DNA from: Kudoa neothunni
Lineage: Eukaryota; Animalia; Cnidaria
DNA length: 64,000 nucleotides
NCBI GenBank assembly: GCA_964304625.1
Contig: OZ199839.1
Location: forward strand, 9,469,979 to 9,533,978
Reading direction: 5' to 3'
Part shown: in pieces, positions 1-21,507 of the stretch
Layout: every line of letters begins with the position of its first letter
Position numbering within the stretch: position 1 is the first letter of the stretch
Translations under genes and position numbers: made by a program
The notes under the pieces: generated by a model
What the model was told of the DNA's origin: nothing
Database searches by the model: none
What the model saw: only the letters and a program-made list of their open reading frames with translations

Positions 1-513
1 TATCGGAACCGCTTTTCTATTGTTGTAGAACAATTCCTTCTTTCAGGAACCCTTACAACAGACTTGAGAGTGTAATGGAATTCTCCGATTACTCTATCTA
101 CTGTACTGAGGGATACGGTAACTCCAAACTCGTCCTGGAGCTTTTGTTTTAATTCTTTTAAAGAGATTAATGAGTTTTCATCAATCCAACTGATTATTTT
201 TTCTTTCTGATCAATCGAAAGAAGTGATCGTTTGTTTCCCCTCTAGGTTTTGGTTTGGAGCAAGAGTTCCATTGCTTCTAAACTTAGACAATATCGACCA
301 AACCGTGGATCTCGGTAACCTCATTTCCGAAGCGATATATCTATCCGTTTTTCCACCCAAGCAAAAATTGCATATTTGCTCCCTTAAACCGGCAGAGATG
401 ATTTTTCTTTGTTTCCTTTTAGGTTGCGTATTTGATGTCGATCTAGCCGAATCAAATTGTTCTGAAACTATACATTCTGAGTCACTTGAAACTCCGCACA
501 TATTTAAATTCAA
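1..513 (-). mobile_element. Tc1/IS630-family transposase, N-terminal part, frameshifted; continues beyond the window start
   Basis: ORF 513-211 has an HTH (REQICNFCLGGKTDRYIASEMRLPRSTVWSIL). After a frameshift it continues KKIISWIDENSLISLKELKQKLQDEFGVTVSLSTVDRVIGEFHYTLK, the second HTH typical of IS630/Tc1. Confidence 0.75.
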
Positions 514-715
514 TTAAATTAACAAAAATTTGTTCAAAATCAATGCTTAGCGTTAATCGAGAATGCGCGTTGAAACCTATATCTTGATTGTATAAGTGCC
601 GCGTTTGATTGTAAAAGTGCCGAGTTAGATCGGGAAACCCTATATAAACAAAATAATATAAAGATGGGCGCATGGAACTGAAGGTTATCCTTTAAGGGTT
701 AAGGAGTACGCCGCC

Positions 716-776
716 ATATTTAATTGAATTATATTTAATTGAATTATATTTAATTGAATTATATTTAATTGAGTTA
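716..776. repeat. 15-bp tandem repeat (ATATTTAATTGAATT) x~4
   Basis: Directly visible. Confidence 0.9.
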
Positions 777-967
777 AACAAATTTTATAATAGGCGTTAA
801 GCGCGATAATTTAAATTATAATTATCAAATGAGAAAAATAAGAATCCGACAATTAACCGATTGCATTATTACAATAATGTTCAATATTCATAACAATTGC
901 CTTAAACTATTCACACACCGCCAAGCGCACTTGTAAACTTACACGGACAATAGAATTAATTGATTAC

Positions 968-2132
968 CAATGTAGCGTGACAAAAACAATTACAAATTCC
1001 ATAGTAATAAGTAATTATGGCACCCCCTATTAATAATTAAGCAGCCTAAATTGTTCATAACAAAACATTATTTAAAAGAGGTAACTAAGAGTGGCTGTGT
1101 GTAATCATGACATTGTAAGACAATAATTTACCGAGTCCAATTCAGACAAAGGAGGAACCCTTAGCTCGCTCATGCCTTTTGAACGGTCACCATCTGCGAA
1201 TTCTTTTATATACAGCTCCTAGTAAAGTAATTGAGTCCAACTATACAACAACACAATTATAATCACTTCAATATCAAGGAGAATTTTCTGAGCATTGGAG
1301 TCCACATGGAATTGGGCTTGATTGATCTTGTTGATAAAGAATGCATTTCCACTAGTTACATTCCAATTTTTGTCATGTTTTTTAAGGATTTTTCGAAATC
1401 CAGTGTAGTTAAGGTGCTAATGGGCAATATTAAATAAATAAACAAATCTAATCTACCTGATAGTTAACAAGAATGACTACTGACAAGTAGAATTCAGTAT
1501 AACAATAGGCCAGTGATTTCATTCGCTTTCTGTAGTTAATTTTTGATGGTTGAATATTCAACTCGAGAGGACCTTCAGACTCATGCCCCAAGTGGGTGAA
1601 TGTTTCTAGTTGAGATTGAGTTAACAGTGTAATCGCTCTCCATCAAAAAATATCAAACTTCTAAGAGTCCCTTGAGAGCTTTTGGATTTCATTTCTGCAG
1701 CTAATTGTTTTAGTAGTCGAAGTTCGCGGGTTAGCTCGGCATATTTTCTAGTGGCCTCTGCTAGCTTTTCTAATACAATCGTATAAACATAAAAACACTC
1801 AATAATAGCGTCGACTCACCATTGTAAAAATTGTTTATTTTCTCCAATTCATTTCCAATTATTTCGTAGAACTCCTTCTCCGATTTATCCAAAATTTCCG
1901 CAAATTGAGTCGAATCTGATCCCGCCAAAACGTCAGCTGTTTATTATTAGATTAAAAAATGTGTGCACTTACATTATAGATACTGTGTCGATAAATGACC
2001 TTTTTAAGCATCTATAATTTTAGATTAAGTGTAATGTTGAGAGACTGATTGAAAAACAATCACTTTGTAGGATAGGTATTGAGTTTTCCATTCTGGTGCT
2101 AGAGAGCTGGCCAACGTTTCTTCGAATTTCAT
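968..2132 (-). CDS. XPR1: XPR1/SYG1 phosphate exporter, 5' part (SPX domain); multi-exon, 3' end not found in the window
   Basis: Manual splicing from the ATG at 2132 (exon 1 = 2132-2064) gives MKFEETLASSLAPEWKTQYLSYK|MLKKVIY...ELEKINNFYN|EKLAEATRKYAEL...TEFYLSVVILVNYQ|HLNYTGFRKILKKHDK...DGDRSKGMSELRVPPL. This matches the XPR1 hallmarks MKF..PEW..Y..Y, GFRKILKKHDK and LRVPPL. Exons below ~1130 are uncertain. Confidence 0.9.
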
Positions 2133-3206
2133 TTAGAAAACCTGGTTCCCTCGGGCAAATGAGACTAGTGGTGTAACTTCCAGCCTTCGCTTACACAGGC
2201 GCATGCTCCACTTTATTAAACCCTCACTAATGTGTTGGTATCGACTAGACAACTATAAACCAAATTTTTATAATTTCCCGAATTGTTTCACCGCAATCTT
2301 TAAAAATTAGGATCATTTTTATTGAATTTGGTAAGCTCATCCACAATTATGCTGCATTTTAATGATCTAGCTGTAAGCTGGTATTTGTTTCTGAATTATA
2401 AACCTTAGTATAGATACTTGTTTTGCTGAGAAATAGTTTTATTTTATGGAATAATTTCGAGGCGGTTTTCATTATTTATCGCTAATAGCGAAATCATGAT
2501 TAGTGCTAATACACTAGTTTTAAATTGAAGCATAATCGACAAAGTAGTTAATTTAAAAAATCAACTTTTCCATAATTATAAAATAGTTCGAAATTGTTTT
2601 GTGTGATTGGATAAGATTGATTTGAAATCACATGATGAATTTGTCACTAGGATTGGTGTGGGAAATTGCACAATTAGATTAACTATATACGTGCAACAAC
2701 ACATATCCTACGTGGATTCAAGAATGAATACTACTCATTAATCAAAATATTTGCTTCATTCATTAAGGATTAAATAATCAAGATTCAATTATTTATGCGT
2801 AGTGCAATATTCTTAATTTAATTTACTGAGAGAAAAATATTCTGCATGGATTGATCAATAAATATCACGATATTTAATGTATTTATTAGCATGTTAAAAT
2901 CTAATTTTATCATTGCATATTAAACACTGCAAGACATGCTTCCTCCATTAAGGCAAATTCCTCCGTCCATTATTGTTGATATTTCCGATAATCCTCATCT
3001 CTATTTCTTTTAATCATCTTCTCAAAAGGTTTTCTAAATTAACTAGCTGACAGCGCTATTAAATCAAATAACGCTTGTTCCCAGATCTCAATACTAAACG
3101 TTGTGTTAACTCTTTTGCATACACGCACATCGACCGCTATTTTTAACATAAAATTTGAAATTTTCATTTCAACATTATCTCATCTGCGTTGCCTATGACA
3201 ATTAAT

Positions 3207-3262
3207 AAATAGATAGATGATAGCTAGATAGATAGATAAATAGATAGATAGATAGATAGAAA

Positions 3263-3313
<51 letters not shown>

Positions 3314-3329
3314 GATAGATAGATAGAAA

Positions 3330-3360
<31 letters not shown>

Positions 3361-3365
3361 GATAA

Positions 3366-3416
<51 letters not shown>

Positions 3417-3430
3417 GATAGATAGATAGA
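3207..3430. repeat. (GATA)n/(AATA) microsatellite, ~220 bp
   Basis: Directly visible; it explains the IYLS-repeat ORFs. Confidence 0.98.
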
Positions 3431-3736
3431 TTGTTGGAACAAAATTCTCCTCGGTAATATACAACAGGTATCATAACAATAAATCTAAAAGACCTAGAAA
3501 AATAAGGTAATGCAATTGAAATTAATATAAAATATTGAAAAAGTAATAATGTTCCTTAACGATTGAGTATTGAGTCATTGTTAACCAATTGATTGGCTAA
3601 CAATAAATTATGCTTTAACTAGTGGTGAAATTTTAGTCAAACTTGTTTTCTTTTTTGTTCAGATAATAGTTTACTGTTAGAAAAACAACAAATACAACTG
3701 TTGCAAATGCCATAATTATTATCCTAGAAATCCACC

Positions 3737-3741
<5 letters not shown>

Positions 3742-3775
<34 letters not shown>
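3742..3775. repeat. (TA)n microsatellite
   Basis: Directly visible. Confidence 0.95.
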
Positions 3776-3778
<3 letters not shown>

Positions 3779-4233
3779 AAGAGTTCGATTGCAAAAAAGT
3801 TTGAGAATCACTGCTTTAGGTTACTGAATATTTGTGTTTTTAATCGATTGTATTAAGCATTAAATATAAGAGTTATAGTAAGTCATTTTCTATTACCATA
3901 ATATGTAACGCAAATTTAAAAATACTCATTAATTTTCTTTATATTCTAACAGAAAATCGAGGCATATTTTAATTAACGTAATTGAATAAACTTAAAAACG
4001 AATTTATGAAAGAAATAAAATTCTGAAGCTTATAATGGACTATAAAAATATATAATTTAGCTTGAGATATATCCATTTAAATTTAAAATACAACTAAAAC
4101 TTGAAAAATTCTCTCACTCATTGCTAAAAAAATTGCGATTCTGCGCCAGCTGGTTATAAATAAAAACAAAATCATGACTAAAATTATCAACTACGCAACA
4201 TATACAAATTCTACAATGCTCAAAAAGAGTGAA

Positions 4234-5947
4234 TTATCTTTTTAAAGTTTTGAGTGGATTTTTTCGTCGAATCTTTTTGAAGGTATGAGCTTTACCTATT
4301 CCCTTGACAAGTCTGGCGCTTGGAATGGTGGAAGCATTAGCTTTAAGAGGTTCAGGTATCAAATAATCAGGCACAAATCCCATGCTATGAAGTGAGCTTT
4401 TGGTAGGAACATTAAAATCGTGTTTGATAGCTATTCTATCACTAGGATTTTTCTTGAAATGCTCGTTGAGATACTTTGAGTTGAGTAATTCACGTTTTAT
4501 TTCAGCCCGCCTTGCAGCTGTGATCTTGCTTTTGTTTAACGAAAACAAAGCATCGTTCACCCTGTAACGGAAACCTTCCACAATGTCCACCTTAAAACTA
4601 AATGGTTTCAATGATTGGTTGGCGTTATCACTGAGATATTTTTCCACAGCTTCTAGCAACTGCTTTTCTTGCGGGGAAACCAACGATAAAGCGATTCCAG
4701 TTTCATTGGCACGGGCAGTACGACCCACACGATGAATGTATGAGGTGATCGTGGCGGGAAAGTTAAAATTGATGATATTGTCTACTTTTACAAAGTCTAT
4801 ACCACGACTGCTGCTGTATTCGTTATCAGAGTTTGCTTTTTTGGCAGAAGAGTTCATCGCTTTCACGTTTGTAGATTGGTCGGTAGCAATCAATATATCC
4901 AATTTTCCAGAATTGAAATATTCCACTATATGATAACGAGAGTTGAATGGCAATTCGTTATTCAATACGCATGAATATATATTAAATTTTTTCTAGAAAT
5001 AGTTTCAATTTGAATGCTGTTTGAATATCATCGGCAAATATTATAAATCTTCCCTTTAGAAGTGAGAGCTTGATAAGTGAATATAAAATTAGAAATTTGT
5101 CGCTCTTCTCACACCTAAAACAACAAAACCTTTAGAATCGTTCCACACAAATCTACAATCAAAATACCTACCTAACTACATATTGCGAAAGTTGTAATTC
5201 TGAAGGCAATGGAGACTCATCCGGTTCAACAGATATTGGGTCATCCAAAATCTGTTCGCACAACTCATTAACGTTAGAATTTAAAGTTGCAGAAACAATA
5301 ATAGTTTGGCTTTTATGGTTGTTGCCGCTGGAGAGAATACCAACAAGTTGTTTGATTTCTTCTTCGTAACCGTATCCAAATAATAAATCAGCTTCATCAA
5401 ATACAACCTGCTTCAAATTAGTCAACAACTTTAGGGTCGGTATCGCGTTCAGATAACTCACCATACGACTTGGTGTCCCAATAACAATATCAAAGGTAGT
5501 TTGTTGTTTGGTTGCATTTTTAAGATACTCCTCGAACAGAGTATCATCAACCAAATTGATTAACGATACGTAACGTCTGCTGAATTGAGACAACTCATAC
5601 AAACAGTTGTACACTTGAGCACATAATTCTCGACTTGGAACTACGACAATTGAATGAATATTAGACGATTCGGCTCGGTATTCTTCAGTAGTGGCTCTTC
5701 GCAACAAACATTCCAACGTAGAAATAGCATACATTGCGGTTTTACCGGATCCAGTTTTGGATTTAATCAGCAGATCTTTACCCTTGAGTGCCTTAGGTAA
5801 TGCTTCCTTTTGAACTGTGGTAGGGTTAGACCAGCCGACCTTTTTCAGTGCTTTCAAAATGCGACTATCCACTGAAAATTCTTCAAACCCCATGCCGTAA
5901 CAAACGTTGTATTCCTCGGGTATTTTCGTTGTTGTATCGGAGTACAT
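4234..5947 (-). CDS. DDX56: DEAD-box RNA helicase DDX56/DBP9; 2 exons (intron 5115-5171); apparent +1 frameshift at 4987-4992
   Basis: Motifs PTTVQ, KTGSGKT, VPSREL, GTPSR, DEAD, SAT, RGIDF and HRVGRTAR. Family-specific segments VLNNELPFNSRYHIVEYFN, EGFRYR, EIKRELLNS and VPDYLIP. Confidence 0.95.
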
Positions 5948-7713
5948 TCGAATTGAGGTGCTCCCCCCATCTTCATTTACTCAGCTATTTTTTGTGAATG
6001 ATTTTGTATTTTAAAATATTATAAATTTTTGTTTGAAAATTTTTATTAAAATATTTAATAATAAGAAAAACTGTAATCTACAGTGAAGCCTCGGATTATC
6101 AAACATCCTTGGATTTTTTTTGTGATTGATTTTTGAATTATTTTCATTCGAAAAAAGAGATTAACTTCATTTATGCATAACGGCTGACGACAAAATATTA
6201 ATTAACGAAATTTGTCACCGTTATTTGGTTCCTTTATTCCAAGTAAATTACTGAGTGTTGAAAGCACGTAATATTACAACTTCTGATTAGAACTATCGAT
6301 ATAGACAATCTCTCAGGCGATAATATTCCAAATACAGTACAGTCTCTGAGTTCGATCAAAAATTTTGAGTCAGAAACACTTTTGCGTTTGAACACATATA
6401 AAGGGTATTCAGAACAAATCCATTCACCGCGAAAAATAAAGAAGCAAAGAAATTCTAGAAGGAGATTCACTCAATAAAATTGTGCTAATGTCATCGAAAG
6501 AACACCCTTTATAATCTATCGTACGAGGACCGATAAATATTTATCCTAAGTAGCATGTGGATTAAATAAAGGGTTGTAACCCTCCAATGTTACGTGCGAT
6601 CGAGAACAGAGCGTTATGGCACCACAGCCTTTTGATGCTAACAACGCAGGCTCGAATCAAAATTCAAAGATTGTGTTACATCGTATATCCCATTTTGATT
6701 ATTTTATACAGTAGGTGACGGCTCTTGCGCGTTACCTATCACTCGTGGACACCTGCCGTGATTTAATGACTTACACAATTCTGTTACTAATTAAAGTAGA
6801 TCGAATAAAAGCATAACAATTATACGAAATTATTAAAACCTTAGTTTTTGTTTTAATTCACATTAACTAAGAATTAGCTCAAATTTACGACTCGTGGGCA
6901 CCTGGAGAGAACTAAGCAGTTTAGTACTTTGAAAGAAAAATTTAATATAATGTCAAATTATCAAAAATATCGAATGGAAATATCAGAATAACTAATATCC
7001 TCAATTATTTTAATTTCAAATCCGTTTCCTCTTTAAATAAAATTTTGGGTAATAAAGAATCCATTCAGAAGGCTCCTAATGCAATGAGAACTACATAAAA
7101 CCGTAAAAAATTAAAAACAATTACGATTTCTATGAATAACGCTCTAATTTATTTAAGTAACATGTACAAATTTTTCCGAAAAAGAAATTATCTACGGCCA
7201 TAGATCTAGAAACGACTATTCATGGTATAAGAGAGTCAAAATTATACCAGTAAATATTAATAACGTTTCCAACCTAAAAATCAAATAATAAATGTGATAA
7301 AACTTTGTAGTTATATTATACTATATATATCGTTTAATTATATGCAATTTACACATATCATCTATCTATGAATTCTTCTACTATATAAAGTAGTAGTAGT
7401 GTACGTGTGGGTGTGCAAATTATAATCTTACACAGAAATTTTTTTATACTTTTTTCCTACTGGCGATACTTATAAAAATGTATTTAGGATTAAAAAATAA
7501 AATAATTTTAATATTCCTTAAATTAGTTGTTATTTTAGATGTATACATTTTTTGGGCAGATTAACTAGCGCAATAACCGGATTATTCATGGTTAATCTAT
7601 TTACCTAATCAACGATCGAAAACTATTTATCGAATAATACAGTTCTCAGAATCTAAATTTTTCTATTTTTGGTTTTATTAATATCTGTCCTACTATATAA
7701 AGTAGCAGTGCCC

Positions 7714-7741
<28 letters not shown>
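7714..7741. repeat. (TG)n microsatellite
   Basis: Directly visible. Confidence 0.95.
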
Positions 7742-7744
<3 letters not shown>

Positions 7745-8009
7745 CACAAACTTTCTCCTTATACAGAAACTTTTTAGATTATTTGATTTTCGTAGTATAC
7801 TTTAAAAAATATAAAATTAATTACAAAAGAACCACGGGATTGTCTACTTTCTAACAAAGCACAAGACGAATTTTCGTCTGAGGCAAAAATGCATAATCAC
7901 TAACCAAATAATAAGTTCTATAATGAAATTAAAATTACCAATCTTAACCCAACTTCCAATTATAAGTTTTTGAGATCGCTTCTAAGTAAAATGTACCATA
8001 ATACTGATC

Positions 8010-9279
8010 TTATTTTTGGCAGATACATCTTAAATTTTCTAATTTTAAAGGAGTCTTCTTATCTGAGGATTGGGAAATAGGATTACACATCTGGTACATT
8101 ATATCATGCTCGACGGAACCTTGATACTCTTTTAATTTCTCTATGAATGTCACAAGACTAGGATGTGGCTGTTCGAAACAAGAACGGAAATGTCGGTTGA
8201 AATTTTCTGCTGGATACTTTCTAGTGTTCTTGAATATGCCTTCCAACATTCTAATGGATACTTTGTGCTATTTATGAAGTTTTTTTCAAAATACTCTAAA
8301 AAATGAGTCAAATTGAGGTTTTTAAAGTCAGAAGATTTTTTTTTCAATTTCTCATATTCGTCTTAAACATTATTATTTAATGGGACGAATGCCAAAGATA
8401 TAAAGCATTTTATAAAAAGCATAAAATCAGCATTATTTTGATATTCTTTTGATAATCCCAAGTTCTGTATTTTTCGATATACGCATTGCCCGAAATGGAA
8501 CAAGCAAAAATATATATTTGATTTTGATGCTTTTTTAAAAGCATTAAAAGAACCAACTTCAAAGTCGAGTACTATATTTTCAGGAAATTCCATAAATTCT
8601 TGATTTTTGATAATTTGAAGGATCTTTTCGTATGTTTACTCATATTTACTTGGCATCAAAACATATATTAGAGGAAAAACTCTTTCAAAACTTTTACCAT
8701 GAATGGTGTAAAGTTGGTAAAATTCTCTTGGTGCAACTTGAAAGGTTCCATCAGTAATCCAACAATGAGAATTTTTCAGATGGGCCAAATTATTGTTTGT
8801 TCCGAAAATAATTATTCTATTTGCGCCAGAAGATTCTGTATCGTAAATGCAAAAATTGTCGTTTCGTAATGTGGTTAGGTAACCACAAAGGTTTGTTTCA
8901 GGATTTATTTGAATATTTCTCCTTTTCCGTATGTTTTGGATATTTTTATAAATATGGAAATTTTTTCACCACAGGCACGTCGTTGATATTTTGACTATTA
9001 GAGGCAATACTATATACTTCACTGGTGAAGTAAGATGTACTCTCAACCAATTTTCGTATTTTGTCCTGAAAAAACCCATATTTTTTTATCTTCCGATATA
9101 TTATGATTATGAAAGTTAATTTTTTCAATATTCCGAGTTTCCGAAGAATCAGTTCTTAATCTCCCACGGCACATCCTATTTTGACACTTCAAATATTGAT
9201 ATGTATTTGTAGAATAATCTATCATGTAAAAATAATCTTCAAACAACAGCAAATATTTATTTCTTTTTGTTTTTAACAT
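8010..9279 (-). pseudogene. Mutator (MULE) transposase with FLYWCH domain, frameshifted
   Basis: FLYWCH-like YLKCQNRMCRGRL...FHNH; WITDGTFQVAP..FYQLYTIHG; VLDFE; CLFHFGQ; AENFNRHF...HPSLVTFIEKLK. Spread over several frames. Confidence 0.9.
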
Positions 9280-9657
9280 AGTATAGTTTTTTTTTCTTGT
9301 TGCCGCTCATTTTTTAACGATTTTTACGAACTCGCATCTAGCGCATGCGCGCTCCGAGGTTCTCCTCGCGAATTTTCCTCATGCCTTTATATACAACTGA
9401 AACTTTGAAAGTTTACTCTTTTCTACTTTTGAACGTACTTAAGACGAATTACAACATTAGTTTGTGCGTAGGCGGGCTTTCGATGCAAACAAAGATTTGT
9501 TGCTTAAACGGGAAATTATTAAATTAATACGCATGAATATATTATTTACTTTGCGCGTTTAGTTAAAGTTAAAAAGTTTTTTATTTTTTTTAATAAACAT
9601 AAAATTATGTTAGAACGTTATGATTAAGTAAAACATTGTTAACAAACTTTTAGATTA

Positions 9658-11707
9658 CAGTCGAGATTGGATATTGCGTGGGTTTCTGGGACCAACAAAA
9701 ACCCACGCAATAAAAAATTTTTACGCAATATCCAGACCTTTGCGTGCGCATTGTACTATAAAATATGATTTTTTCGTGTTTACGTCCGATGCCAATTAGT
9801 GAAAATCAAATTTTTATATATAAATATATTATTTAATTAAATGAAATGTGATTTATCAAATTTTGTCGAAAAAGCTTGTAATTTTAGTTTGTCGGAATCT
9901 TTCTCTTGATATTTTTAAAACTCGGTCCATTATGGGATGTAAATCAAACGATCCCGTCGGATCCTCTTTAATAAAAGCTTCCCTCAGAACGTTCACTGCA
10001 TTTTTCATTTGATTAATTGAAATTTTGATGTCTTCAATGATTGATTCTCTATCGTCAGATTCGTCACTTATGGGCAATAAGTCGTCATTATTTTCTTCCT
10101 CATATGTTGCTTCATAATCGTCATCAAACATATTTTCTGAATCTTCGATTTCATCTAGAAAAAATTAATTACGTATACGTTAAATATTACCTTGAGAACA
10201 GTTGCTGATTTGAGGTATCTCACTCACATCTTCTTGGTCTATAAACTGATAATAACTTTATTGTCGTAATTTTATTTAATACCTCCAAATATTTTTGATT
10301 TTTTAAAGCAATTAATAATAATTTGCGGCGGAATACTTTCCCAACATTTAGCTAATGTTATCATTGAGTCAAGCAATGTATATTTTTTTATGATAGAATC
10401 TTCGCATAAAACCATTCGCTCGGTCATTGAACTTTTGTACCTGCTTTTAAGGCAGCGAATGATGCCTCCTAAATCAAGGGGTTGTAAAATACTAGTTGTA
10501 TTTTTAGGTAAGAACAAAAATTTGATATTTTCAAAGCAATCAATATTTTTTGGATGGCCTGGACATTGGTCCAACAAAATTAAGACTTTTCTATTCTGAT
10601 TTATCATCCTTCGGTTAAACTTTTTCATTATTTCGATAAATATACTAGAAGTCATCCATGCACTTTTTTGTGCATAATATTCACAAGGGAGGTGTTTGAC
10701 TCTTTTAAAACATCTAGGATTTTGAAATTTCCCGATAACAACTAATGGGAACTTATCCCCATTTAAAGCTGAGGACAGTAAAACAGTCACCCTTTTTTTG
10801 GATAATTTTTTCCCCTTAATCCCGACTTCCTCCTTTAAAACGTAACTACTATTTTGTAACTGCTCATAATAAAGAGCAGTTTCGTCGATGTTAATAACGT
10901 CTTTTGGATTATATGCTCTAATCAAATCAATGTTCTCAATAATCCATGAGTCGACAGATGCAACATCTGCACTCGCAGCCTCGCCATGGAACTTTTTGAA
11001 AACTATCCCATATCTTGACTTGAACCCTGCAAGCCATCCCTTGCTGGCTTTAAAATTGGAAACTTTGTTTTCATTTGCAATATAAGAAGCTTTTTTGATA
11101 ATGGCATCTCCTGACAGAACGTTACCATTCGACCGTTGTTTAACAAACCAATCATACACTTCATCGTCTATATTTTTTGAATCTGCCTGCCGAATGTCTC
11201 TTCCTTTTACTTTCAATATCTGTATTTTTGAATTTATCTTCGTGCGAAAGAATTCTATCAAGTGTTGAATGACCTTAAATGTGATTTTACAATACTATTC
11301 ATTAGAAGACTACTATAGCACTCAATTTAAACTTGGAAATTGTCATTGATTTCGCACCCTTCAACGTTTTTATTGAATTGTAGTAATGGATGATTTCCAT
11401 TTTCCTCTGAAATATTGCGTTGTTCACGGGACATAATGAAAAAACACTATCTGAATTAAACCAATTGACCACAAAAAACCACGCAATAACGAGTCACGCT
11501 GCGCCTAACAACCACGCAATAAAAAATTTCCACGCAATAACGAGACTTTTTGTATTAATAAATTTTTTTAAATTTTTTGTTAACAAATATTTTTACATTA
11601 CAATAAGATAATAACAATTTGAAAAAACTAAATTTCTCTCTTTAAAGGATAACTTTAAAAATCTCTAATTACGCAATATCCAGTCACGCAATATCCAATC
11701 TCGACTG
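9658..11707 (-). mobile_element. pogo/Tigger DNA transposon with both ends and a disrupted transposase
   Basis: Perfect 23-bp TIR CAGTCGAGATTGGATATTGCGTG with TA flanks. CENP-B HTH (FKASKGWLAGFKSRY) and DDD motifs (NIDET, LLDQCPGH, QPLD). A 36-nt intron at 10155-10190 and a C-terminal PIP-box-like QTKITSFF. Subterminal ACGCAATA repeats. Confidence 0.95.
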
Positions 11708-12037
11708 TAGTTAGTTCACCGACGGGTTGCGTAAAGCGATTAATACGCCTCATGATTTGTAAGAGCTTATGATTTCTTAATGAAAATAAGGTCCAATAAC
11801 GTAGAAAGTGAGGATGATCGGGCCATAGCTGTTTATTTCGATCATGACTGTTATAGAAAGGTCGATAAGATAATTATAATTGACTTTGAACATAAAATGA
11901 CCTTGGTCTATTCCAAACCAAAGTCAGCGTGGTCGGGAAAGGAAACCCAAGCGAAGCGGGGTTTTTGCGCTAGTATGATATAAATTAAAAATGTTTACAA
12001 TCTTAATACTAAATTCTCCAGTTTAATTTACTTTTGG

Positions 12038-12583
12038 GGTTAAAATGTAGAATAGTGGCCACATTTTCCGATTAAAGATTATAATTGGTTCGTAGATTAA
12101 TCCGGAATTTTTTATAACACCTTAGCATGAAATATGTTGAACATTAATGGTAGGTATGAGTGGATTAATTACAATAAAATATTTTTGATCTTAGCGTTAT
12201 GCATTTGATACACTGTAACACCTAATGCGTGCAGATAATACTAATTTCTTATTCTTATAGACATAGAATTAGTAATAGGCAATCGCTAATGATGAAATAT
12301 GATAATCAATAAAAAATCATAGTTGTCACAATCAAATTTTAGGATAAAACAAAGCATGCTTTACTCCATCGATTAAATCGTATGTCCTGTGGAAATAACT
12401 ACGAGGGGCTAGCAGTTATTTAGAGAACATATTATAAAAAGTATTATCGATAACAAATACAATGCCGAAAATAACCTACTGGTGGTGAAACAATGATAAA
12501 TACAAAAAATTAGAATAATCAACAGGTTCGATTTTTATCATGGTCGCCGATTTGGATTACGGCTACTATTCTACATTTTAACC
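12038..12583. mobile_element. MITE (Merlin-like), 546 bp
   Basis: TIR GGTTAAAATGTAGAATAGT(G/A)GCC and a perfect 8-bp TSD ACTTTTGG. Confidence 0.9.
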
Positions 12584-12681
12584 ACTTTTGGTTTTCTATA
12601 TAAGTCTATTCAATACGTGGTAGTCAAAATAATGGGTTTTTCACTACAGTGAACAATGGGACCGAAAGGGTTGATAAATGC

Positions 12682-13762
12682 GGCTAAAATACGACATAGC
12701 GATGAAAGTCGGTGGTAATCGTATCTCTTCGTCGTGCTAAAAAATAGATTATTCTACGGTCGAAATCGATGATATCCTCATAGAAGTCGTCTTCAACCTA
12801 ATTAAGGATCAACCCAAATTAGTATTCTTATCACAGAGATTTGATTTACTGCCAAAAATTCGCCCGTGTGAATCTTGCAATTCAGATATGCTGCTACTCA
12901 GACCATTTTTGCAATATTGGCTCATTTATATTCCGTTGTTATAAATGTAATAAAAAAACACCAGGTAAAAAATGCAGAATAGGGACGTTTTTTGAAGGGG
13001 CGATGTTTACGTTATTGCAAATTTTTTATATAATTTTTGCGAACCTTAACAATACACATATACGAATTACAATACAGTTTTGAGGCAATTAAAGATCTAC
13101 TCAAGAGAAACACTTTTCAACTGGAAGAATTATATACTTGAAATCTATATGGAGTATCATAATATCGAAAGTACTTCAAATGGTGGTTCAGATATTATTG
13201 TGCAAATTGATGAATCCCATGTAAGCAAACGCAAATACCATCGCGGTAGAGTGCTTGTGAATCAAAATGTGTGGGAAATTGGAGCAATCGATGAAGGTGG
13301 AAGCATATTTCAAATCTTAACTGAGGTTAGGAATCAAGCCACACTGGAGACGATTATCTCCCAATATGTGTTGGTGGGATCCACCGCCTGGACCGATTTA
13401 TGGGGTGGCTACAAAAATCTAAACATGGTAGGCTATCATCATGATAAGGTTAACCATAGTATTAAATTTCGAACGTCGGATGCAGTCCATATAAACAGAA
13501 TTGGGGCCATTTGGGGTGCCATCAAGCGCAAGTTCCGCTATATAACTAACAAATAACTAACAAAAAATCGGAATTAATGGGTTCTTACTTGATCGAATAT
13601 CAATTTAAAAAAACAGTTAAAAATGATAAAATTTCAAAATATATATCTTTTATTAACCAAATTTATTTACATTGACAAATACACGGTTTTTTGTGTGTTA
13701 CGAATTTCGCGCCGAATGTTCACGAAATGTAACGACTTTCGTCGCTCTATCGTACTTTAGCC
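12682..13762 (+). mobile_element. Merlin (IS1016/ISXO2-like) transposon, defective
   Basis: ~30-bp imperfect TIR GGCTAAA(A/G)TACGA..AGCGA(T/C)GAAAGTCG. Transposase motifs VQIDESH, KRKYHRGR, WTDLWGGY, VNHS, NRIGAIW (catalytic E appears as G). Contains a frameshift. Confidence 0.9.
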
Positions 13763-14674
13763 AAAAATAGCATAATCAGTGGCCATTATGGCGTCAATAC
13801 TTTCGAGAATTAAAGTTTTTTAGCGTGATACTCATTTCTCGGCCGCTGTCTGGCCTTTACCGAAACTGTCCGTATTGTGTAGTTTAATCAAAATTTTAAT
13901 ATTCACTGTTGAATTTCTGAAGGAATAGAGAGAGTTTTGTGAGATATCTATAGAAAATGAATATAGAATAAATTTCATTTCAAGACAATGATAGTTGCCG
14001 ATTGAAGCATGTTATAGATGCACATAAGTAAGATTTTTTGGCAAAAATATAAAGAAATGTTATTAATATTGCGTTAAAAAATGAATAAGAAATAAAATAG
14101 TATTTATAATTTTTAAGAATGGGTCATTCACCAAATTTTATCCTAATGGAAAAGGGGCATAAATATTTTTTCAACCAAATAATCTTACTAATATTTTTTT
14201 TATTCTATTTAAATAAACGGTGTCATGCCCATGCCGAAAAATAAGTAAAACACACAATCGGCTGCGCACGCACATTAGGTGCATATTATCGGTTGAATAC
14301 TGTGTATACAGTAATTATTGTCATTTATATAAACTTTGTTGACATTTTTTAATTGAACTTATGATATAAAAATAACTTTTTACAACCAATGATAAAAGAT
14401 TGTTTGCAATTATTAATTTGTTTTATTATTCGCAACATACTTCATGAATATCATGTAGTTTCCGAAAACTTTATCCATTAAATATCGATTAATTACAAAA
14501 TTGAAGTTTTAGGAAACTAAACAGCATCCGAATTGGATATAAAATAAGACTTATACAGACTTTTAACTGAAATAGTTTATATGTGAATTAATAATAGTTA
14601 AAACAACTTTCGGTCTCAACTATGAATATCATTCGTTTAAATCCAGATAATTGTCGCGTTGAATTAAGGTTTAT

Positions 14675-17600
14675 ATGACATTATTATTGTCAATGAGTTA
14701 CATACCAAACATACTTCTGCTGATTTTAGGAGGTAGTAGTTTATGAAAAATTTATAAAAAATATTTCTTTATTAGTTATTCATGAAAACCACGTTTCTTC
14801 TATTGAGATTGATAATAATCTGATGACTTTGAAATTCTCGAACCTAGAAAATAAATACTCTATTTCGATTTCTGGATACGATATCGAAAATAGCCAAAGG
14901 AAATGTGCCTTACAATATTATGATACGACGGGACCATTATTAAAAAGTATTCCTACTTGCAATAGTGATATTGGAAATGGAATTGGAGATGAAAAAGCAC
15001 AAATGTGCATTTACACATGTAAACAAGTACAACTAAAAATCTCTGGATTACAATTTAAAACCATTAAATACATAAAATGGTGTCAAGGAAAGGATAATGA
15101 AAGTGTTAAAACATGTCAAGATAAGAGAGTTTACAAGATTAAAGGTAAGCTAAATTTTTTTAATACTATTATAATTACGATTTTAGATATTTATTTAAAA
15201 AGCGAGTTTTCGACATCGAAAATCAATGATGAATTTACTGTTTCCATTAAAAACAAAGTAAATGGTGGCTTCTCCGCCATGGTTGATCTTAAAAAAGAAA
15301 CTACAGTGGCTTCGGGTAATGACTTTTTTACAACTAAAAGTATTAATATGAATACAAAATTATATAAACCCCATTACATTATTGAATTCATCGATAAATC
15401 TCCCGAAATATTTCTAAACCCTCAAAAACCTGTCAATGATTGGTTTATTGCGACTGGCTCAAAACATATAGACAGCTCGAAATATTATTACACAATTAAA
15501 CTCGAAAATCCGGAACCTTCGAAGATTTGTTATTTTGGAATAAAGGAAATAAATGAATCTCATTTTACTTCATATTGTTCAGTCTACAATAAGGCGGGCC
15601 CATGTTTTCAACCTTGTTTCAAGGCGACATTATATCATCACTCAAATTTAAATTTTGCTCAAATTATGGTCATACCCTACAACAATTTGACATCTAAAGA
15701 GTTTTTTCAAATTGTCACCTGTAATAAAGAAAACTTAATATTTTGTTAATTAAATTTTTAGTTGGCAACCATCAAACAACTGTTAATCCTAGTAAAGATC
15801 GGATTACTGTTGATCTAAACAACTTGAATAAAAATGTGGGGTCCAATGATGCTGTTAGCTCCGCAGCTATATCAGAAATTAAATTAATTAAAAAATACAT
15901 TGGAATTGAAGCTGTTGGTGAAAATCTTACATGCAGTAGCACTGAAGAATGTCTTAGTTTTGGTTCAAAAACTGTGACACAACTAGCACCATTAACCGAG
16001 TATATTATAAAGGTCAAAATAACCGGACTTACAACCGTTGATTCTCCTGAAGTTAACCATTACCATAAATACATATATTTCAAAACAAAAGGTGAAATTA
16101 ACTAATAATAATTTTTTTAATGTTAATAGGAGAACAATTTGAAGCAACTAGAAATATTACACCGGAAACTGTATCAGGTCAACATACGCAATTAACCCTT
16201 CAACCAAAAGATCTTTTCCTGCCTGGAAAAAATTTAAATGCAAAATGTGAACTTTATTATTCAATTGGGGATGAGGCTTCAAAATATCCAGCTACGTGTC
16301 GAATAGGTGATACTAACAAATTTTGTTCGGATGCATGCAACAAAAGCTTTACTATTGTTAACCTGGATCCTAAAACGAGTTACAAGATTACAGTCTGTTC
16401 CAAAGGATATACGTGCGAACAAAGCAATCCAGAAACAGAAAGTAATTTTTATATTCCTGAATAAAATTTATTATTATAAATAGCCGGAGAAACATCATTC
16501 ACGATTTCTACAAATGACGTGGGTGAAAGTAAGAGGACTACTGTCACTATGGCTCCTTCGAGTTCTGAAAGTTTAGGGAATTCGTGGGCATACGTTCTAT
16601 TTGAAAGACTGTCTAAGAAAATAATTATTGATTGTTTGAATGGTCCCTGCGTTCCTACCATATCGGCATCAAATATATTAGATATTTCCTGGGATATTAT
16701 CGACGCAGAAATAGCATACGAAATAGTTGTGATAAATATTGCTACAAGCAAACCTCTGGCGAAAGATATAAAAAGTTTTAATTGTGTAAAAAAATTGGTC
16801 TACTTTTTTTAGGAAGCATTGTGGAAGGTAGTGATCGGATGATTTTAAGATACGATACGACGAATAATAATTATAAAATAAAATTTAAGGACGACTTTAC
16901 AACACTAAAGCATGAACAATGTACAGTAAAAAAATCAAAAGACGATTTATCTGATTATGAGGATGCCGGTGAAAATAATGGAATTATTAAAAAAAGTTGC
17001 AACACACTTGATATAGAATCAACCATCATTCTTAATGATAAATATAAGCTCAATTATATTTCTTATACTTATCAATATTCTAAGGAAGAAACTGTTGATT
17101 CATCATCTGGACTTGCGAAACCAGAGGAAGAGAGACTCGAAAGTGGTACGGAAAAATCACCAGAACCAACAGCACAAAGAAAAAAAACGATCTCATACCC
17201 AAAAGGAAAAGTTTATTCATATTTCATGGGTAATTTATAATTGAAATATAAATATAATTCTTTCAAGATGATTACGAGGAAATAACTTATGCTGCATCCC
17301 TTCATGATGATAAAATAAAATTAGGATCAAATAAATGTTCGTTAAACTGCGAAGCATATAAGGACAATCAAAAACAAGACGGATTAACACAAAATGAAGT
17401 TAATCCATGCTCCAATTTTGAGAGTTATTCAATTCAATTCGATGAGTTGGTTAAGGATTATCATATCCGCTGCCCAAAACATTTTGACTTCCATTACTTT
17501 TACGACAACGATTTCGTGAAAAATAATGCACCAGTTTTTAGTAGATTTTACTACGAATTAACTAATGACTACACAAATAAAAGGTTTACAATAAAATTGG

Positions 17601-20600
17601 TAAATGAAAACCCTTCTGAAATGTGTACGTTTGAATGGTTGGACGCAACTGCGTCTTCTTCAAATAATTTTTTTTCTAATAAGTGTGAAAATAAAAGAAA
17701 CTGTTTATACAGTATGTGTAATAATGTGATTTTTGGAAATATAACAGAGAGCGTAAAAGCGGTAAAAATTCGTGTCTTAAAATTAGGAATGCAACCTACT
17801 CCTGGTTATCAAAGCAACATCTACATATGTATTATGTTAATCATCTACAAAATAGTAATTGTATTATTTAGTGAAGCATGGACAGGATGTACCTGTGACA
17901 ACTTCAAACAACGACATAAAAATTGATATTGGTACTAAAAATAAATATGAAGGAGGCGAACATGTTACTGAACCCTCCTCTGCTACATGTTCGTTGAGTT
18001 ATTGGAATGCGTATGCACCACTTGTTAATGAAAATGGAAGAAAATCCCCCACCTCTTCAACCTGTAATTTCGGTGAGCTGGAAATAACACCAGATCCAAA
18101 CCACTTACATAATGATGTTATGGTGAAAATATCAAATATACCAGGTTATTCTCCACGAAAATACTTTTATTACAAGACAAGTAATTATTTTGAATATATA
18201 TTTTTTAATAAATTTTATTAAGCTCAATCGACCGTACTTTCAACTGGAGAAGTAGCGGTTACATCAACTGAAGATGGATTTTCTTTCATCCTTAATATAT
18301 CAGTGTCATCCACCACATGCACTATTTATGTAAAAGAAAAAGATTCAACGAATGGTTATTACCCGGCTATGTGTACCGGAAAAGTATTGTGTGTCAATAC
18401 TTGCAACACACAATTTACCCTAATTGGACTTTATTCTGGCGCTAGCTACGATATTAAAATTGTACCCAGTGGGAATTATGAAATGTTAGAAGTAAAAAAC
18501 AAACAAACAAGTAGTATAATTGATCTAAATTTTAACAAATGTATAATAGATGGCAGTAAAGTTGATTTTCAAATTTCTGGAGGGACTACAAAAGATAACC
18601 TTATAATTACTCCTAAAGTCATTATTAATAACGCTGATAATACTGAATGTTATTATCAATTATATAGACATGAAACGAATGAATGTAATAAGTTCTTTCA
18701 TATTATTTTATTTATTTGATGTAGTTTCACACACGAATATACAAAAATCATGCATAAGATGTACCGGAAGTGATCTTAAACAATGCAATGAGATCCAATT
18801 CGATCAAAATTCATATAGTAATAAGTACAACTACAGATTAATGATATACGTGGATAGAAAGTCGCCACCAGTCAAAATCCCCATTCCAGGTATAATGGTA
18901 TATTTCTTCTTACATTATTTAATATGTATTTGTAGCTTTTTCCAGACACGGTAAACTACAACAAAAATTTGTGCCCGCAAGTGGTGAAAATATTGAGAAA
19001 TTCTCTATTTCACTTACCGAATTTCCCGATAGCAGTAAATGCGTGATAAAATTAACAAGTTTTGGTGAAACACCGATATTCAATAAACCAGCTTGCTCTA
19101 TTATCACAGATAGAGATTACTGCACTGTTGATTGTCCGACATCTAGGCCCGTTGAGATTGATTATTTAAATTCAAAAATTGATCGATATATATCGGTTTG
19201 TTATGGTTCAAATGATGAAGAAGCAAAAAAATGTAAAAAGGTGTCGGTTTTCCCAATTAGAATGGGTATTTTAATTATATATTATATTAATGAAATATTG
19301 AAAGATTCTTTTGTATTTTTAAAATACTACATTTTTTTAGATTATCGGATGAAAAATACATATAAGATGACTCACATTGATAATAAAGTTAGTTTATCGT
19401 ACAAGTCGAACTCAAAAACCGAGTGGGAAGTGAGTACTGACGAGAGAAGTGATTTATCCAGTGACTCACAAATAACTTCCTTAAATAAATCAAGTTATTC
19501 AGACAACGTCGAAACAAAGTCCGCTGATTTCTCAGTCGATAGATACATGAGTTATTACAAAATAAATTCAACATTATTATGGCCTGGAATAATATATTAT
19601 ACCAATACTACTTTCCTAAACAGTAGCATTCCAATAAAATCTCAAGTTATACACTCAGTTTCAAGTATCGCTAATAAAAACAATCAACTAAAACTAAGTT
19701 TTTCGCCTGGCCCTTACAATGATGAAATGTGTCACATCAAAGTATTTGAAGTCCAGTCAGATGGCAAAGATAAAGAAAGTAATGTTTTGAATGCATTCGG
19801 AGTTGTGAAAGATGGGTGTTACCAACTATGCGAAGACGGTGTTATCAACTTAACCAATGATTATCAAAGGGTTGGAGTGATTATAAAAAGAAGATTCGAT
19901 ACCGTGGGGTTCAAGCAATACCATAAAAGTTTTTGAAATTTTTCATCATTTAATTAATAAATAAATATAGGAGGTGATACTGGCCTTAGTTTATCTGAAA
20001 TTTCCAATGTGGGTGTTAAACTCACGGGACTAAGTATTTATAAAAATTTAATCAATCAAGCTTTAACCCCAACATGTACTATTAATATATCCAAAGCTAA
20101 TACCATATCTACTGAAACAAGGGCTAAGTGTGATGCTAGTAGTGCTGCATGTTCCACTGACTGTCAACAGTCATATACGATTAATAATTTAGAAGCTGGT
20201 ACGGACTATCTGGTATCAGTGGGAATTACTAATCTTGGAATTAATGGCCAGTATATCAAGAAGTTGGTGTTTAGAACGAGTATTATCGAACTCAAATTTT
20301 AAATTCTGAATTTAAATAGTTGGTGGAATTGAGTTAACTACAACCGAGTTTCAAGCAACATTAAAAGCTGGAACCGCCACGGTTACGCCATACCAGACTG
20401 ACAATTATCTTCCGATATGTAGAGTTTTACTTAAAAAGGATGGTGAATCAGATCCAAAATACATGGCTACATGCGAAGGAATGGGGGCTTGTAAGAACAA
20501 ATGTGAGGGTCCATTCAAAATAGTTAACCTAGCGTTGGGACAAAAGTATGAAATATCTGTGGAACCATCTGACGGTAAAAATGTAAAAACATACGAAATT

Positions 20601-21507
20601 ACCACAAGTATTATGTTCAAAATTTTTGTTGCCTGTATAATTTATAAAAGAAAATGCCGATCTCACTTTTTCAGTGAATTTTGTGGAAAACGATGAATTA
20701 AAAATTGTCACGGAGTTTACTGGAAAAAATAAAGACTCTAAATGTCCATTTATATTGCAAGAGAAAAAAGGCAAAATATTGTCGATAGTTACTTGGTGTA
20801 GTGATGACGATCCTTGTGCAGCCAATAATTGTGTTATTAATCTTAATAGATTGTCGAGGGGAAAAGATTATGTTTTAAGTATAAAAGCGAAAGATTATTC
20901 AAAATATAAACAACAGGATATTTTATGTAAATATATGTTTTGTATTAATTATCGATTTATATATAATAATATAAAAAGATTCAAAAATTTCAAAGTTGTC
21001 AGGGTAAATAAAAGCTCATATATTAAATACATAAAAAATGTTTTAGTAAATTAATAAATAAAGTATTCAAATAAACAATATGTAAATAGAGGAGCAGGAA
21101 ATAAATAGTGAATATACAAATATCAACGTGGATGAAATTATTCAAAAAGTCATAAGAATAGTTGAAAAGGGGGTGAATAATTATTTTATTCTAAATTTTG
21201 ATTCTTATCATCATATAGTAAATTTCTTGTAATTGCTACTGTTAAAAATTATCAAATGAATAGATAACATAGATAAACATGATAATAATGCCGCGAAGAA
21301 TGAAAATTCGTATTTTATGTTAGTATTATTATGGTTAATATTTTATTAGGTCGTCTAATAGATACCTGTAAACTGATTCATGTAGTGTCAATGATAATCC
21401 TTTTATGTAGTCTTTATGGAATGATCCCTATCGTGACATCATTGTTGGTAATAATTGGTCTAGTTGTGTACAGAAGGAGGGCTAAAGATGCTAGTTATGA
21501 TTTATAA
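14675..21507 (+). CDS. Large (~1,950 aa) type-I membrane protein: signal peptide, 3x six-domain Cys-containing FN3-like cassette, TM helix, short tail
   Basis: Exons: 14675-14732, 14776-15144, 15187-15720, 15762-16091, 16130-16441, 16484-16774, 16813-17229, 17268-17828, 17872-18180, 18223-18510, 18550-18684, 18725-18889, 18936-19265, 19341-19928, 19971-20279, 20320-20607, 20651-20926. All 16 introns are GT-AG phase 1 and give an open 1,853-codon frame. Signal-like N-terminus MTLLLSMSYIPNILLLILGVIHENHVSS. Last exon 21411-21507 encodes LYGMIPIVTSLLVIIGLVVYRRRAKDASYDL*. Small linker exons in 20927-21410 are not fully resolved. Confidence 0.88.

Follow-up and report, generated by a model that had tools for sequence, protein, structure and literature searches.

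A triplicated multi-domain cassette in a Kudoa neothunni gene and its family of predicted surface proteins

Between positions 14675 and 21507 of a 64,000-nucleotide stretch of the Kudoa neothunni genome (C2:9469979-9533978, hereafter the window) lies a series of fragmented open reading frames (ORFs), and the question that this locus raises is whether they belong to one gene, how its repeated domains arose, and what the encoded protein may do. K. neothunni is a myxozoan, a highly reduced cnidarian parasite in fish (tuna) muscle, and its assembly, recovered from yellowfin tuna reads, comprises 40.2 Mb in three chromosome scaffolds with a scaffold N50 of 12.0 Mb, a GC content of 30.4%, a median intron of 49 bp, and an 18,219-bp mitochondrial contig (PMC12239612, G3 2025). 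The same report describes low coverage, residual haplotypic duplication, and very few parasite transcript reads (PMC12239612). As described below, the locus probably represents one gene of a family of about 55 paralogs, whose products would be type I membrane proteins about 1,920 residues long with a putative surface coat or adhesion role. Its ectodomain consists of three copies of an older cassette, A-B-C-D-E, in which B is a pair of an immunoglobulin (Ig)-like and an FN3-like domain; the signal peptide is followed by 18 beta-sandwich domains, which are mostly divergent FN3 domains with a lineage-specific cluster of four Cys residues.

Gene model and the repeated cassette

The gene model was built junction by junction from stop-free blocks of the genomic sequence, and the searches and fold predictions were run exon by exon, with joined readings serving only as local frame checks of the 3' exons. 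In this AT-rich window (GC 26-36%), a single plus-strand gene was delineated, running from an ATG at 14675 to a stop codon at 21505-21507. The introns from E1 to E17 were of the GT-AG type and in phase 1 throughout, and measured 38-46 nt save one of 75 nt; the exons after E1 up to E17 had lengths in multiples of three, and the chain E1-E17 carried no internal stop, start, signal peptide, or transmembrane segment. This phase-1 chain, together with the same exon order in paralogs, was in good agreement with an earlier note on the window, which had read the fragmented ORFs as splicing to one frame. Its sizes for E9 and E15 (309 nt) and for E10 and E16 (288 nt) were confirmed, the peptide motifs it quoted were all present in the exon translations, and its count of about 18 beta-rich domains is consistent with 18 when each double-size B exon is counted as two. 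The ratio of nonsynonymous to synonymous substitution (dN/dS) relative to two paralogs was 0.13-0.60 for each exon from E2 to E17, which indicated that all of them are coding and under constraint. The encoded protein contained 3.4% Cys, one CxxC, and 15 N-x-S/T sequons, and the number of Cys residues was even in every module but E14, in which a Phe occupies the fourth Cys column, kept as Cys in the compared paralogs.

In place of a self dot-plot of the spliced protein, the exon peptides were compared all against all by Smith-Waterman z scores relative to shuffles, and profile-profile comparisons were made with hhalign on six-paralog exon alignments. The highest score was obtained for E10-E16 (z 12.7, hhalign 97.6%), followed by E15-E16 (z 8.1, 95.6%), E4-E9 (z 7.8, 92%), E5-E10 (z 7.3, 97.2%), E2-E13 (z 7.2, 96%), and E5-E16 (z 7.2, 97.7%). 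The double-size exons scored lower: E3-E8 gave z 3.0 with 88% by hhalign, and E3-E14 (z 4.1) and E8-E14 (z 3.3) were not significant by hhalign. Even between matched exons, identity within the gene was only 20-34%. The significant pairs were colinear, falling into module types A (E2, E13), B (E3, E8, E14), C (E4, E9), and D (E5, E10, E16) at offsets of 5, 6, or 11 exons. Furthermore, a distant relative at C3:8.35 Mb (L036) carries one cassette, whose modules run B, C, D, E, E. Its B module was matched by the profiles of E8, E14, and E3 (E = 3e-22, 1e-9, and 1e-6, respectively), and E14 is thereby tied to E3 and E8; the single-cassette organization of this relative, in turn, marks the cassette as the evolutionary unit, and relatives with one cassette in the order B-C-D-E persist in the genome. 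By their Cys pattern, E11+E12 and E17 were recognized as 4-Cys modules, and E15, though at position C, was closer to the 4-Cys D module than to E4 or E9, so that the proposed exon type comprising E4, E9, and E15 holds for the first two, whereas E15 resembles the D type more. The proposed division of the gene into three cassette copies (E2-E6, E7-E12, and E13-E17) was likewise supported by E2/E13, E3/E8/E14, E4/E9, and E5/E10/E16, but not by E6, E7, E11-E12, and E17, which are taken up again where the explanations are weighed. The coordinates of the exons and of the neighboring features are summarized in Table 1.

Table 1. Exons of the gene and neighboring features in the window
Feature	Position	Strand	Observation
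E1: hydrophobic signal peptide with the start codon; 19 codons + 1 nt	14675..14732	+	Short hydrophobic first exon with GT donor ~100 nt upstream of E2 in five paralogs
E2: cassette 1 module A, 6 Cys (4-Cys pattern plus extra C-terminal Cys pair)	14776..15144	+	Matches E13; dN/dS 0.31
E3: cassette 1 module B, double size, two domains	15187..15720	+	Matches E8; Cys columns common with E8-type alignment A3
E4: cassette 1 module C with 2 Cys and an FN3-like Tyr corner	15762..16091	+	Matches E9
E5: cassette 1 module D, 6 Cys in total (4-Cys FN3-like core and two others)	16130..16441	+	Sub-threshold Pfam fn3, E 0.0075; matches E10, E16; clade by position
E6: cassette 1 module E, 2 Cys, beta-rich	16484..16774	+	Open in paralogs, 31-56% amino-acid identity; dN/dS 0.45-0.60
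E7: cassette 2 first module plus acidic/Pro-rich linker	16813..17229	+	Diverges more among paralogs than any other exon
E8: cassette 2 module B, 8 Cys, Ig-like N-terminal and FN3-like C-terminal domain	17268..17828	+	Best conserved of the family's exons
E9: cassette 2 module C, 309 nt	17872..18180	+	Exon comparisons
E10: cassette 2 module D, 4-Cys FN3-like, 288 nt	18223..18510	+	AlphaFold2 and Foldseek
E11 (18550-18684) and E12 (18725-18889): one 4-Cys module (1 + 3 Cys), cassette 2 module E, 40-nt intron between	18550..18889	+	E12 profile matches E-position module of L036
E13: cassette 3 module A, 6 Cys	18936..19265	+	Matches E2
E14: cassette 3 module B, double size, 3 Cys	19341..19928	+	~53 intact family copies
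E15: 4-Cys D-type module at position C of cassette 3, 309 nt	19971..20279	+	Sub-threshold Pfam fn3, E 0.0062; matches E16
E16: cassette 3 module D, 288 nt	20320..20607	+	Exon comparisons, module tree
E17: cassette 3 module E, 4-Cys pattern	20651..20926	+	Acceptor at 20650 kept in six paralogs
25-nt mini-exon, phase 1 in, phase 2 out	20979..21003	+	Length, frame, and AG/GT same in window, L010, L011, L012, L033; peptide kept in L034, L035
E18: short acidic juxtamembrane exon, conserved, 64 nt	21109..21172	+	63 nt in L010, L011, L012, L033
E19: 18-nt exon	21350..21367	+	AG...GT and frame kept in L010, L011, L012, L033, L035
E20: single transmembrane helix, RRR stop-transfer, 11-residue tail ending Y-D-L	21411..21507	+	Paralog comparison
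DEAD-box RNA helicase gene (DEAD + Helicase_C), short intron	4234-5947	-	Animal gene, ordinary housekeeping neighbor
pogo/Tc5-type transposase ORF (DDE_1 + HTH_Tnp_Tc5)	10272-11261	-	
ISXO2-like (IS1595-type) transposase fragment	13080-13556	+	Transposase remnants 1-4 kb upstream of the gene

Fold of the modules

The alignment of 32 D-type sequences (A2) revealed invariant Ala48, Cys50, Cys56, Cys60, Leu69, and Tyr75 and a near-invariant Cys32, and in the 4-Cys modules the Cys cluster C...C-x5-C-x3-C sits just before the FN3 tyrosine corner. The AlphaFold2 model of the E10 module (pLDDT 87.8, pTM 0.80) had seven strands, and its DSSP string placed the four Cys residues where strand C begins and in the neighborhood of the C'/E segment. 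The top Foldseek matches of this model were all FN3 scaffolds (monobodies; TM 0.65-0.71, root-mean-square deviation (rmsd) 2.0-2.4). In line with the tyrosine corner noticed earlier, positions 56-85 of the D-module profile matched the E-F region of bona fide FN3 domains of titin, Dscam, fibronectin, and tenascin in the PDB, with E down to 1.5e-6. The Pfam search on all exons gave no match above threshold, the best being fn3 (PF00041) at 16.9 and 17.2 bits relative to the gathering cut-off of 25, at positions 47-80 of the hidden Markov model. The earlier statement that the domains could not be assigned to a known family therefore stands as regards Pfam matches above threshold, but not at the level of the fold, where the AlphaFold2 and Foldseek predictions identify the 4-Cys module as a divergent FN3 domain.

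The per-domain check by AlphaFold2 and Foldseek, run on E10 and E8, gave for the latter an all-beta model of moderate confidence (pLDDT 73.8), whose Foldseek matches were two-domain cytokine-receptor and Ig tandems. By VIA-align, the E8 model resembled Ig constant-type domains over residues 3-79 (Z 8.1, rmsd 2.5, 77 aligned) and FN3 domains over residues 88-186 (Z 7.0), and because Z scores of 7-8 fall in the range that VIA calls common, only the presence of two beta-sandwich domains is firm for this exon. Every score of the ESM Atlas features for E8 was below 0.85 and hence uninformative, and the PDB sequence search with the E8 profile returned no match.

The properties of the module thus compare well with those of the FN3 domains (PF00041) in RPTPs, Dscam/sDscam, and contactins, namely a seven-strand sandwich of ~90-95 residues with the corner L-x5-Y-x-(I/V)-x-(I/V), and the gene shares with animal multi-FN3 type I proteins the arrangement of one domain per phase-1 exon, a signal peptide, tandem domains, a single transmembrane helix, and a short tail. 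In contrast to canonical FN3, the Kudoa module bears the four-Cys cluster in its C-C'-E region and reaches 17 bits against the Pfam cut-off of 25, and unlike RPTPs, Dscam, and contactins, the protein is devoid of a catalytic or signaling cytoplasmic domain. The class I cytokine receptor homology module consists of two FN3 domains with four Cys residues and a WSXWS motif. This was the best Foldseek match type of E8, which likewise combines two sandwich domains, the first of them bearing four Cys; however, E2-E17 contain zero WSxWS, the first E8 domain is of the Ig C-type by VIA, and the 11-residue tail offers no room for Box motifs. The organization of the whole ectodomain can be compared with the titin A-band, which is built of 7- and 11-domain Ig/FN3 super-repeats: in both, a fixed multi-domain cassette is repeated in tandem, and domains are nearer to their positional counterparts than to their neighbors. 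Titin, unlike the Kudoa protein, belongs to the intracellular filaments of muscle, lacks disulfides, a signal peptide, and a transmembrane helix, and has many more repeats.

The paralog family and its relatives

The genome search covered 40,260,978 bp (C1, 17,154,348 bp; C2, 12,040,071 bp; C3, 11,048,340 bp) and yielded at least 150 scored matches to the D module among 481 candidates. The E8-type exon was found in ~57 intact copies at 51-83% identity, ~9 broken copies, and at least 85 distant copies at 23-32%, and the E14-type exon in ~53 intact copies, each ~2.07 kb downstream of an E8-type exon. There are thus ~55 intact paralogs, spread over all three chromosomes, and ~10 further family loci that are clearly broken; the tBLASTn check for paralogs suggested earlier therefore disclosed that the window gene is not unique. 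Five paralogs examined in full by tblastn (L010, L011, L033, L034, and L035) showed E2-E18 in the same order, with 31-83% amino-acid identity per exon. The closest relatives lie at C3:3.92 Mb, C2:9.70 Mb, and C2:9.73 Mb, and the window gene itself is isolated, 130 kb from the nearest family cluster (C2). Within this large family, it represents an ordinary and possibly damaged copy.

Because the ~55 paralogs have the same 18-domain architecture, the triplication is a trait of the family rather than an event in the window gene. In the tree of D-type modules, moreover, the modules grouped by position and not by gene (minimum number of label changes; 0 of 200 shuffles as low), from which it follows that the triplication predates the family expansion. 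As a separate observation, the synonymous divergence (dS) was uneven along the gene, being 0.23-0.35 in E14-E17 and 0.40-0.88 in E2-E13 relative to L010, and above 0.77 in E2-E4 relative to L011, which suggests recombination or gene conversion among the paralogs. In a further paralog, L012 (C2:~9.70 Mb), a run of N was found inside E7 (L012 ~6710-6930) with no E2-E6 found beyond it, so that a further family member may be interrupted by a gap in the assembly.

Outside the genome, the D-module profile was searched against 1.84 billion representative proteins, and no annotated homologue was present among the matches listed. Within the best 150 matches, seven short fragments of ORF type were the only ones to show the 4-Cys pattern; the long proteins matching the profile (hundreds) were generic multi-FN3 proteins, matched via the tyrosine corner. 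The protein homologue search with E8 returned a single 106-residue ENA fragment. Contigs of ENA ERZ28624939 (L037 and L039; sample SAMEA5316497), which matched the family at 65-70% nucleotide identity, carried E4-E6 and E9-E14 in order, and a Logan contig of SRR33849685 (L038), which showed no DNA match, carried E10 and E12-E17 in order at 26-44% amino-acid identity. The exon order across the E12-E13 cassette junction and the short introns are thus also present in contigs of two other organisms, and these contigs, which come from public metagenome or run assemblies, probably represent further kudoids or myxozoans whose DNA is concealed in data from hosts or the environment. Since the ENA pieces nest among the K. 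neothunni paralogs in the module tree, the family expansion appears to be older than the split from the species of the ENA contigs, and taken together, the comparisons place the triplication before both the expansion and the split of related species. No orthologue outside this narrow parasite lineage was found in the searches made, and with no Pfam match above threshold and no annotated homologue in the 1.84 billion representative proteins, the view of the locus as a lineage-specific extracellular multi-domain gene held up.

No description of the family was found in the literature on fibronectin, surface proteins, and gene families of Kudoa and Myxozoa. The genome paper contains none of the words fibronectin, surface, expanded, and orphan and does not describe the family (PMC12239612), and a recent preprint on the myxozoan Sphaerospora molnari, which reports VSP-like and RIFIN/STEVOR-like lineage-specific surface families, makes no mention of FN3 or of the Kudoa family (bioRxiv 10.64898/2026.02.11.705288). 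With these families, as with the apicomplexan 6-Cys (s48/45) and SRS proteins, the Kudoa proteins share the concept of expanded, lineage-specific, Cys-stabilized parasite surface families. They differ from all of these in fold and show no sequence or Pfam relation to them (no s48_45 at E<=1), and unlike VSP, the Kudoa protein has 3.4% rather than >10% Cys, no CXXC arrays, and a tail ending in Y-D-L.

The 3' end and the weighing of explanations

The 3' exons were defined from paralogs down to ~45% identity, and one splice model was tested in paralogs. No simple splice from E17 to the transmembrane exon kept the frame, and the model with the 25-nt exon, E18, E19, and E20 was in frame in L010, L011, L012, L033, and L035. 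The C-terminal tail ended in (S/T)-Y-(D/E)-L in all seven copies compared. In the window gene, the G-run at the E18 donor (21169-21173) was one base longer than in these five paralogs, with the result that the donor is in phase 0 instead of phase 2; with the family splice sites, the window copy meets a stop two codons into the 18-nt E19, and its summed exons amount to 5764 nt, or 3n+1. The signal peptide, transmembrane helix, RRR, and short YDL tail noted earlier were therefore all represented by exons, but E18 and the transmembrane exon are out of frame in the assembled copy. The stretch after the E19 donor was taken as an intron because L010 carries an 8-nt indel just past that donor.

Several other exon arrangements were tried and rejected. 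A start of E17 at 20675 was ruled out, as six paralogs have an acceptor two bases before the same Asn/Asp codon, giving 20651; read-through of E17 to 21003 loses the frame in L010 and L011; a second mini-exon at 21047-21062 is interrupted by an in-frame stop in L012, and its use would require an intron of 29 nt; and an exon in the conserved block at 21264-21309 has an acceptor phase that fits neither donor. A path open in the window only (donor 21229, acceptor 21323, one long last exon) is in frame, but neither L011 nor L012 has its sites, and sequence that is intronic in the family would be translated in two places. The block 21264-21310, which lies in the long E18-E19 intron, is conserved in one frame (A-A-K-N-x-N-S) down to paralogs of ~50% amino-acid identity and is flanked by a conserved AG before it and a conserved GT at its end, with phases that suit neither neighboring exon; it might serve as an alternative exon or have a regulatory role.

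The reliability of single bases in this region can be judged from a duplicate upstream. The stretch C2:9450508-9469778 (L009) was 99.6% identical to C2:9469979-9489162 (window 1-19184), with exactly 200 N between the two, and this 19.2-kb copy carries E1-E13 of the window gene and ends at the contig end. Over window 9950-18566, 23 of the 35 differences between the copies were single-base changes of homopolymer length, and nearly all of those that fall in exons of the gene break the reading frame in the upstream copy. Judged from these sequence features, the upstream copy looks like an unmerged contig overlap or a haplotig, not a second gene or a biological tandem duplication. The differences also indicate that the assembly has homopolymer indel errors, at least near contig ends, and a single miscount in the G-run would hence be a sufficient explanation for the phase slip. 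As assembled, the window copy would be either misassembled at a homopolymer, or an anchorless (secreted) or decaying variant.

With the frame of the paralogs, the leader, the even Cys counts, and the 15 sequons would be those of a secretory-pathway protein, whose 18 domains could form a long (tens of nm), disulfide-stabilized, glycosylated rod on the parasite cell surface. The rod would be held by one transmembrane helix with basic residues on its inner side and a short tail, and the C-terminal Y-(D/E)-L, which is invariant, resembles a signal of the PDZ type or one for sorting. This ending fits the class II PDZ-ligand pattern hydrophobic-x-hydrophobic-COOH. By analogy with tandem FN3/Ig ectodomains, the protein is most likely a surface coat or adhesion molecule of parasite cells, which might act between parasite cells or towards host tissue. 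The earlier suggestion of an adhesin, receptor, or surface coat was thus consistent with an extracellular multi-domain gene having signal-peptide, transmembrane, and short tail exons, except that a signaling receptor is unlikely because the tail comprises only 11 residues.

A number of points weigh against a three-cassette, membrane-anchored protein from this locus. E7 showed no sequence match to E2 or E13 (hhalign 12%), and no significant match was found among E6, E11+E12, and E17 by exon comparison or hhalign; the signal peptide and transmembrane helix of the window gene were called by eye only; the E8 model is of moderate confidence, with VIA scores in the common range; and the frame break in E18-E20 uncouples the transmembrane exon from the ectodomain as assembled. 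With the E18 donor phase-shifted and a Cys of E14 unpaired, the membrane-anchored form may not be made from the window locus. The four cassette positions without a significant internal match, and a gene model built on genomic sequence alone, could also be expected if the ORFs were several adjacent genes or if the repeats were a chance similarity of beta-rich, AT-biased ORFs. We regard this as extremely improbable, given that the significant matches are colinear, that the chain has no internal start, signal, transmembrane, or stop features, and that five paralogs checked in full and, across E12-E13, two other organisms show this exon order as well.

The broken 3' frame itself leaves room for two other accounts. 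The window copy could be a recently disabled family member, that is, an early pseudogene in which the extra G is real and the Cys loss in E14 is a second lesion; the longer G-run relative to five paralogs, the 3n+1 exon sum, the Phe at a Cys column kept by the compared paralogs, the solitary position 130 kb from the cluster with transposase remnants 1-4 kb upstream, and the ~10 clearly broken family loci would all be in keeping with it. However, the 17 large exons are all open, every splice site is intact, and the assembly carries the single-base homopolymer errors described above, so that we consider this account rather unlikely, though it deserves attention. Alternatively, the phase-0 donor of E18, the longer G-run, and the 3n+1 sum might reflect a naturally secreted, anchorless variant, a soluble 18-domain protein ending two codons after E18. 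An mRNA with a premature stop two exons ahead of its end is usually subject to decay; moreover, the stop arises from the phase slip rather than in a dedicated terminal exon, and the transmembrane and tail exons downstream are still intact and conserved, which renders a secreted form quite improbable. At the level of the family, a large, clustered, surface-type family in a parasite, with uneven dS relative to different paralogs suggestive of a mosaic of recombination or gene conversion, brings to mind a repertoire of variant surface antigens that evades immunity by switching expression among the ~55 genes. Purifying selection on all exons, the recognizable orthologous modules across species, and the lack of any hypervariable exon in the window gene speak against this, and its probability seems very low. 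A family of membrane-anchored coat or adhesion proteins hence stays the explanation that we favor.

The window locus alone adds modest value, as an ordinary, possibly damaged family member; the weight of the finding lies with the family. At ~6.8 kb each, the ~55 genes amount to ~1% of the K. neothunni genome, and the share is much larger when related modules are included. The family is undescribed in the genome paper and in the recent comparative myxozoan preprint, and it has probably been overlooked, since protein hints guided the annotation that was published. Structural interest attaches to the FN3 variant with its Cys staples and to the conserved super-repeat of six domains, and the family bears on myxozoan genomes in general, which are very reduced and hold many genes that are uncharacterized orphans. 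As a speculative and, in our estimation, unlikely extension, the ~55 genes and hundreds of further 4-Cys FN3-like modules in a 40-Mb, ~5,300-gene genome might constitute the principal coat with which multivalvulid myxozoans face the host or recognize one cell by another. Such a coat would be an innovation of cnidarian parasites comparable to the apicomplexan 6-Cys/SRS or var-type repertoires, in which the choice or recombination of paralogs would generate surface diversity. If the proteins are located on the surface of the plasmodium or spore, they would be prime candidates for host-parasite contact and for Kudoa diagnostics in commercial fish, and would provide a comparative case of a cnidarian parasite surface built from FN3 domains.

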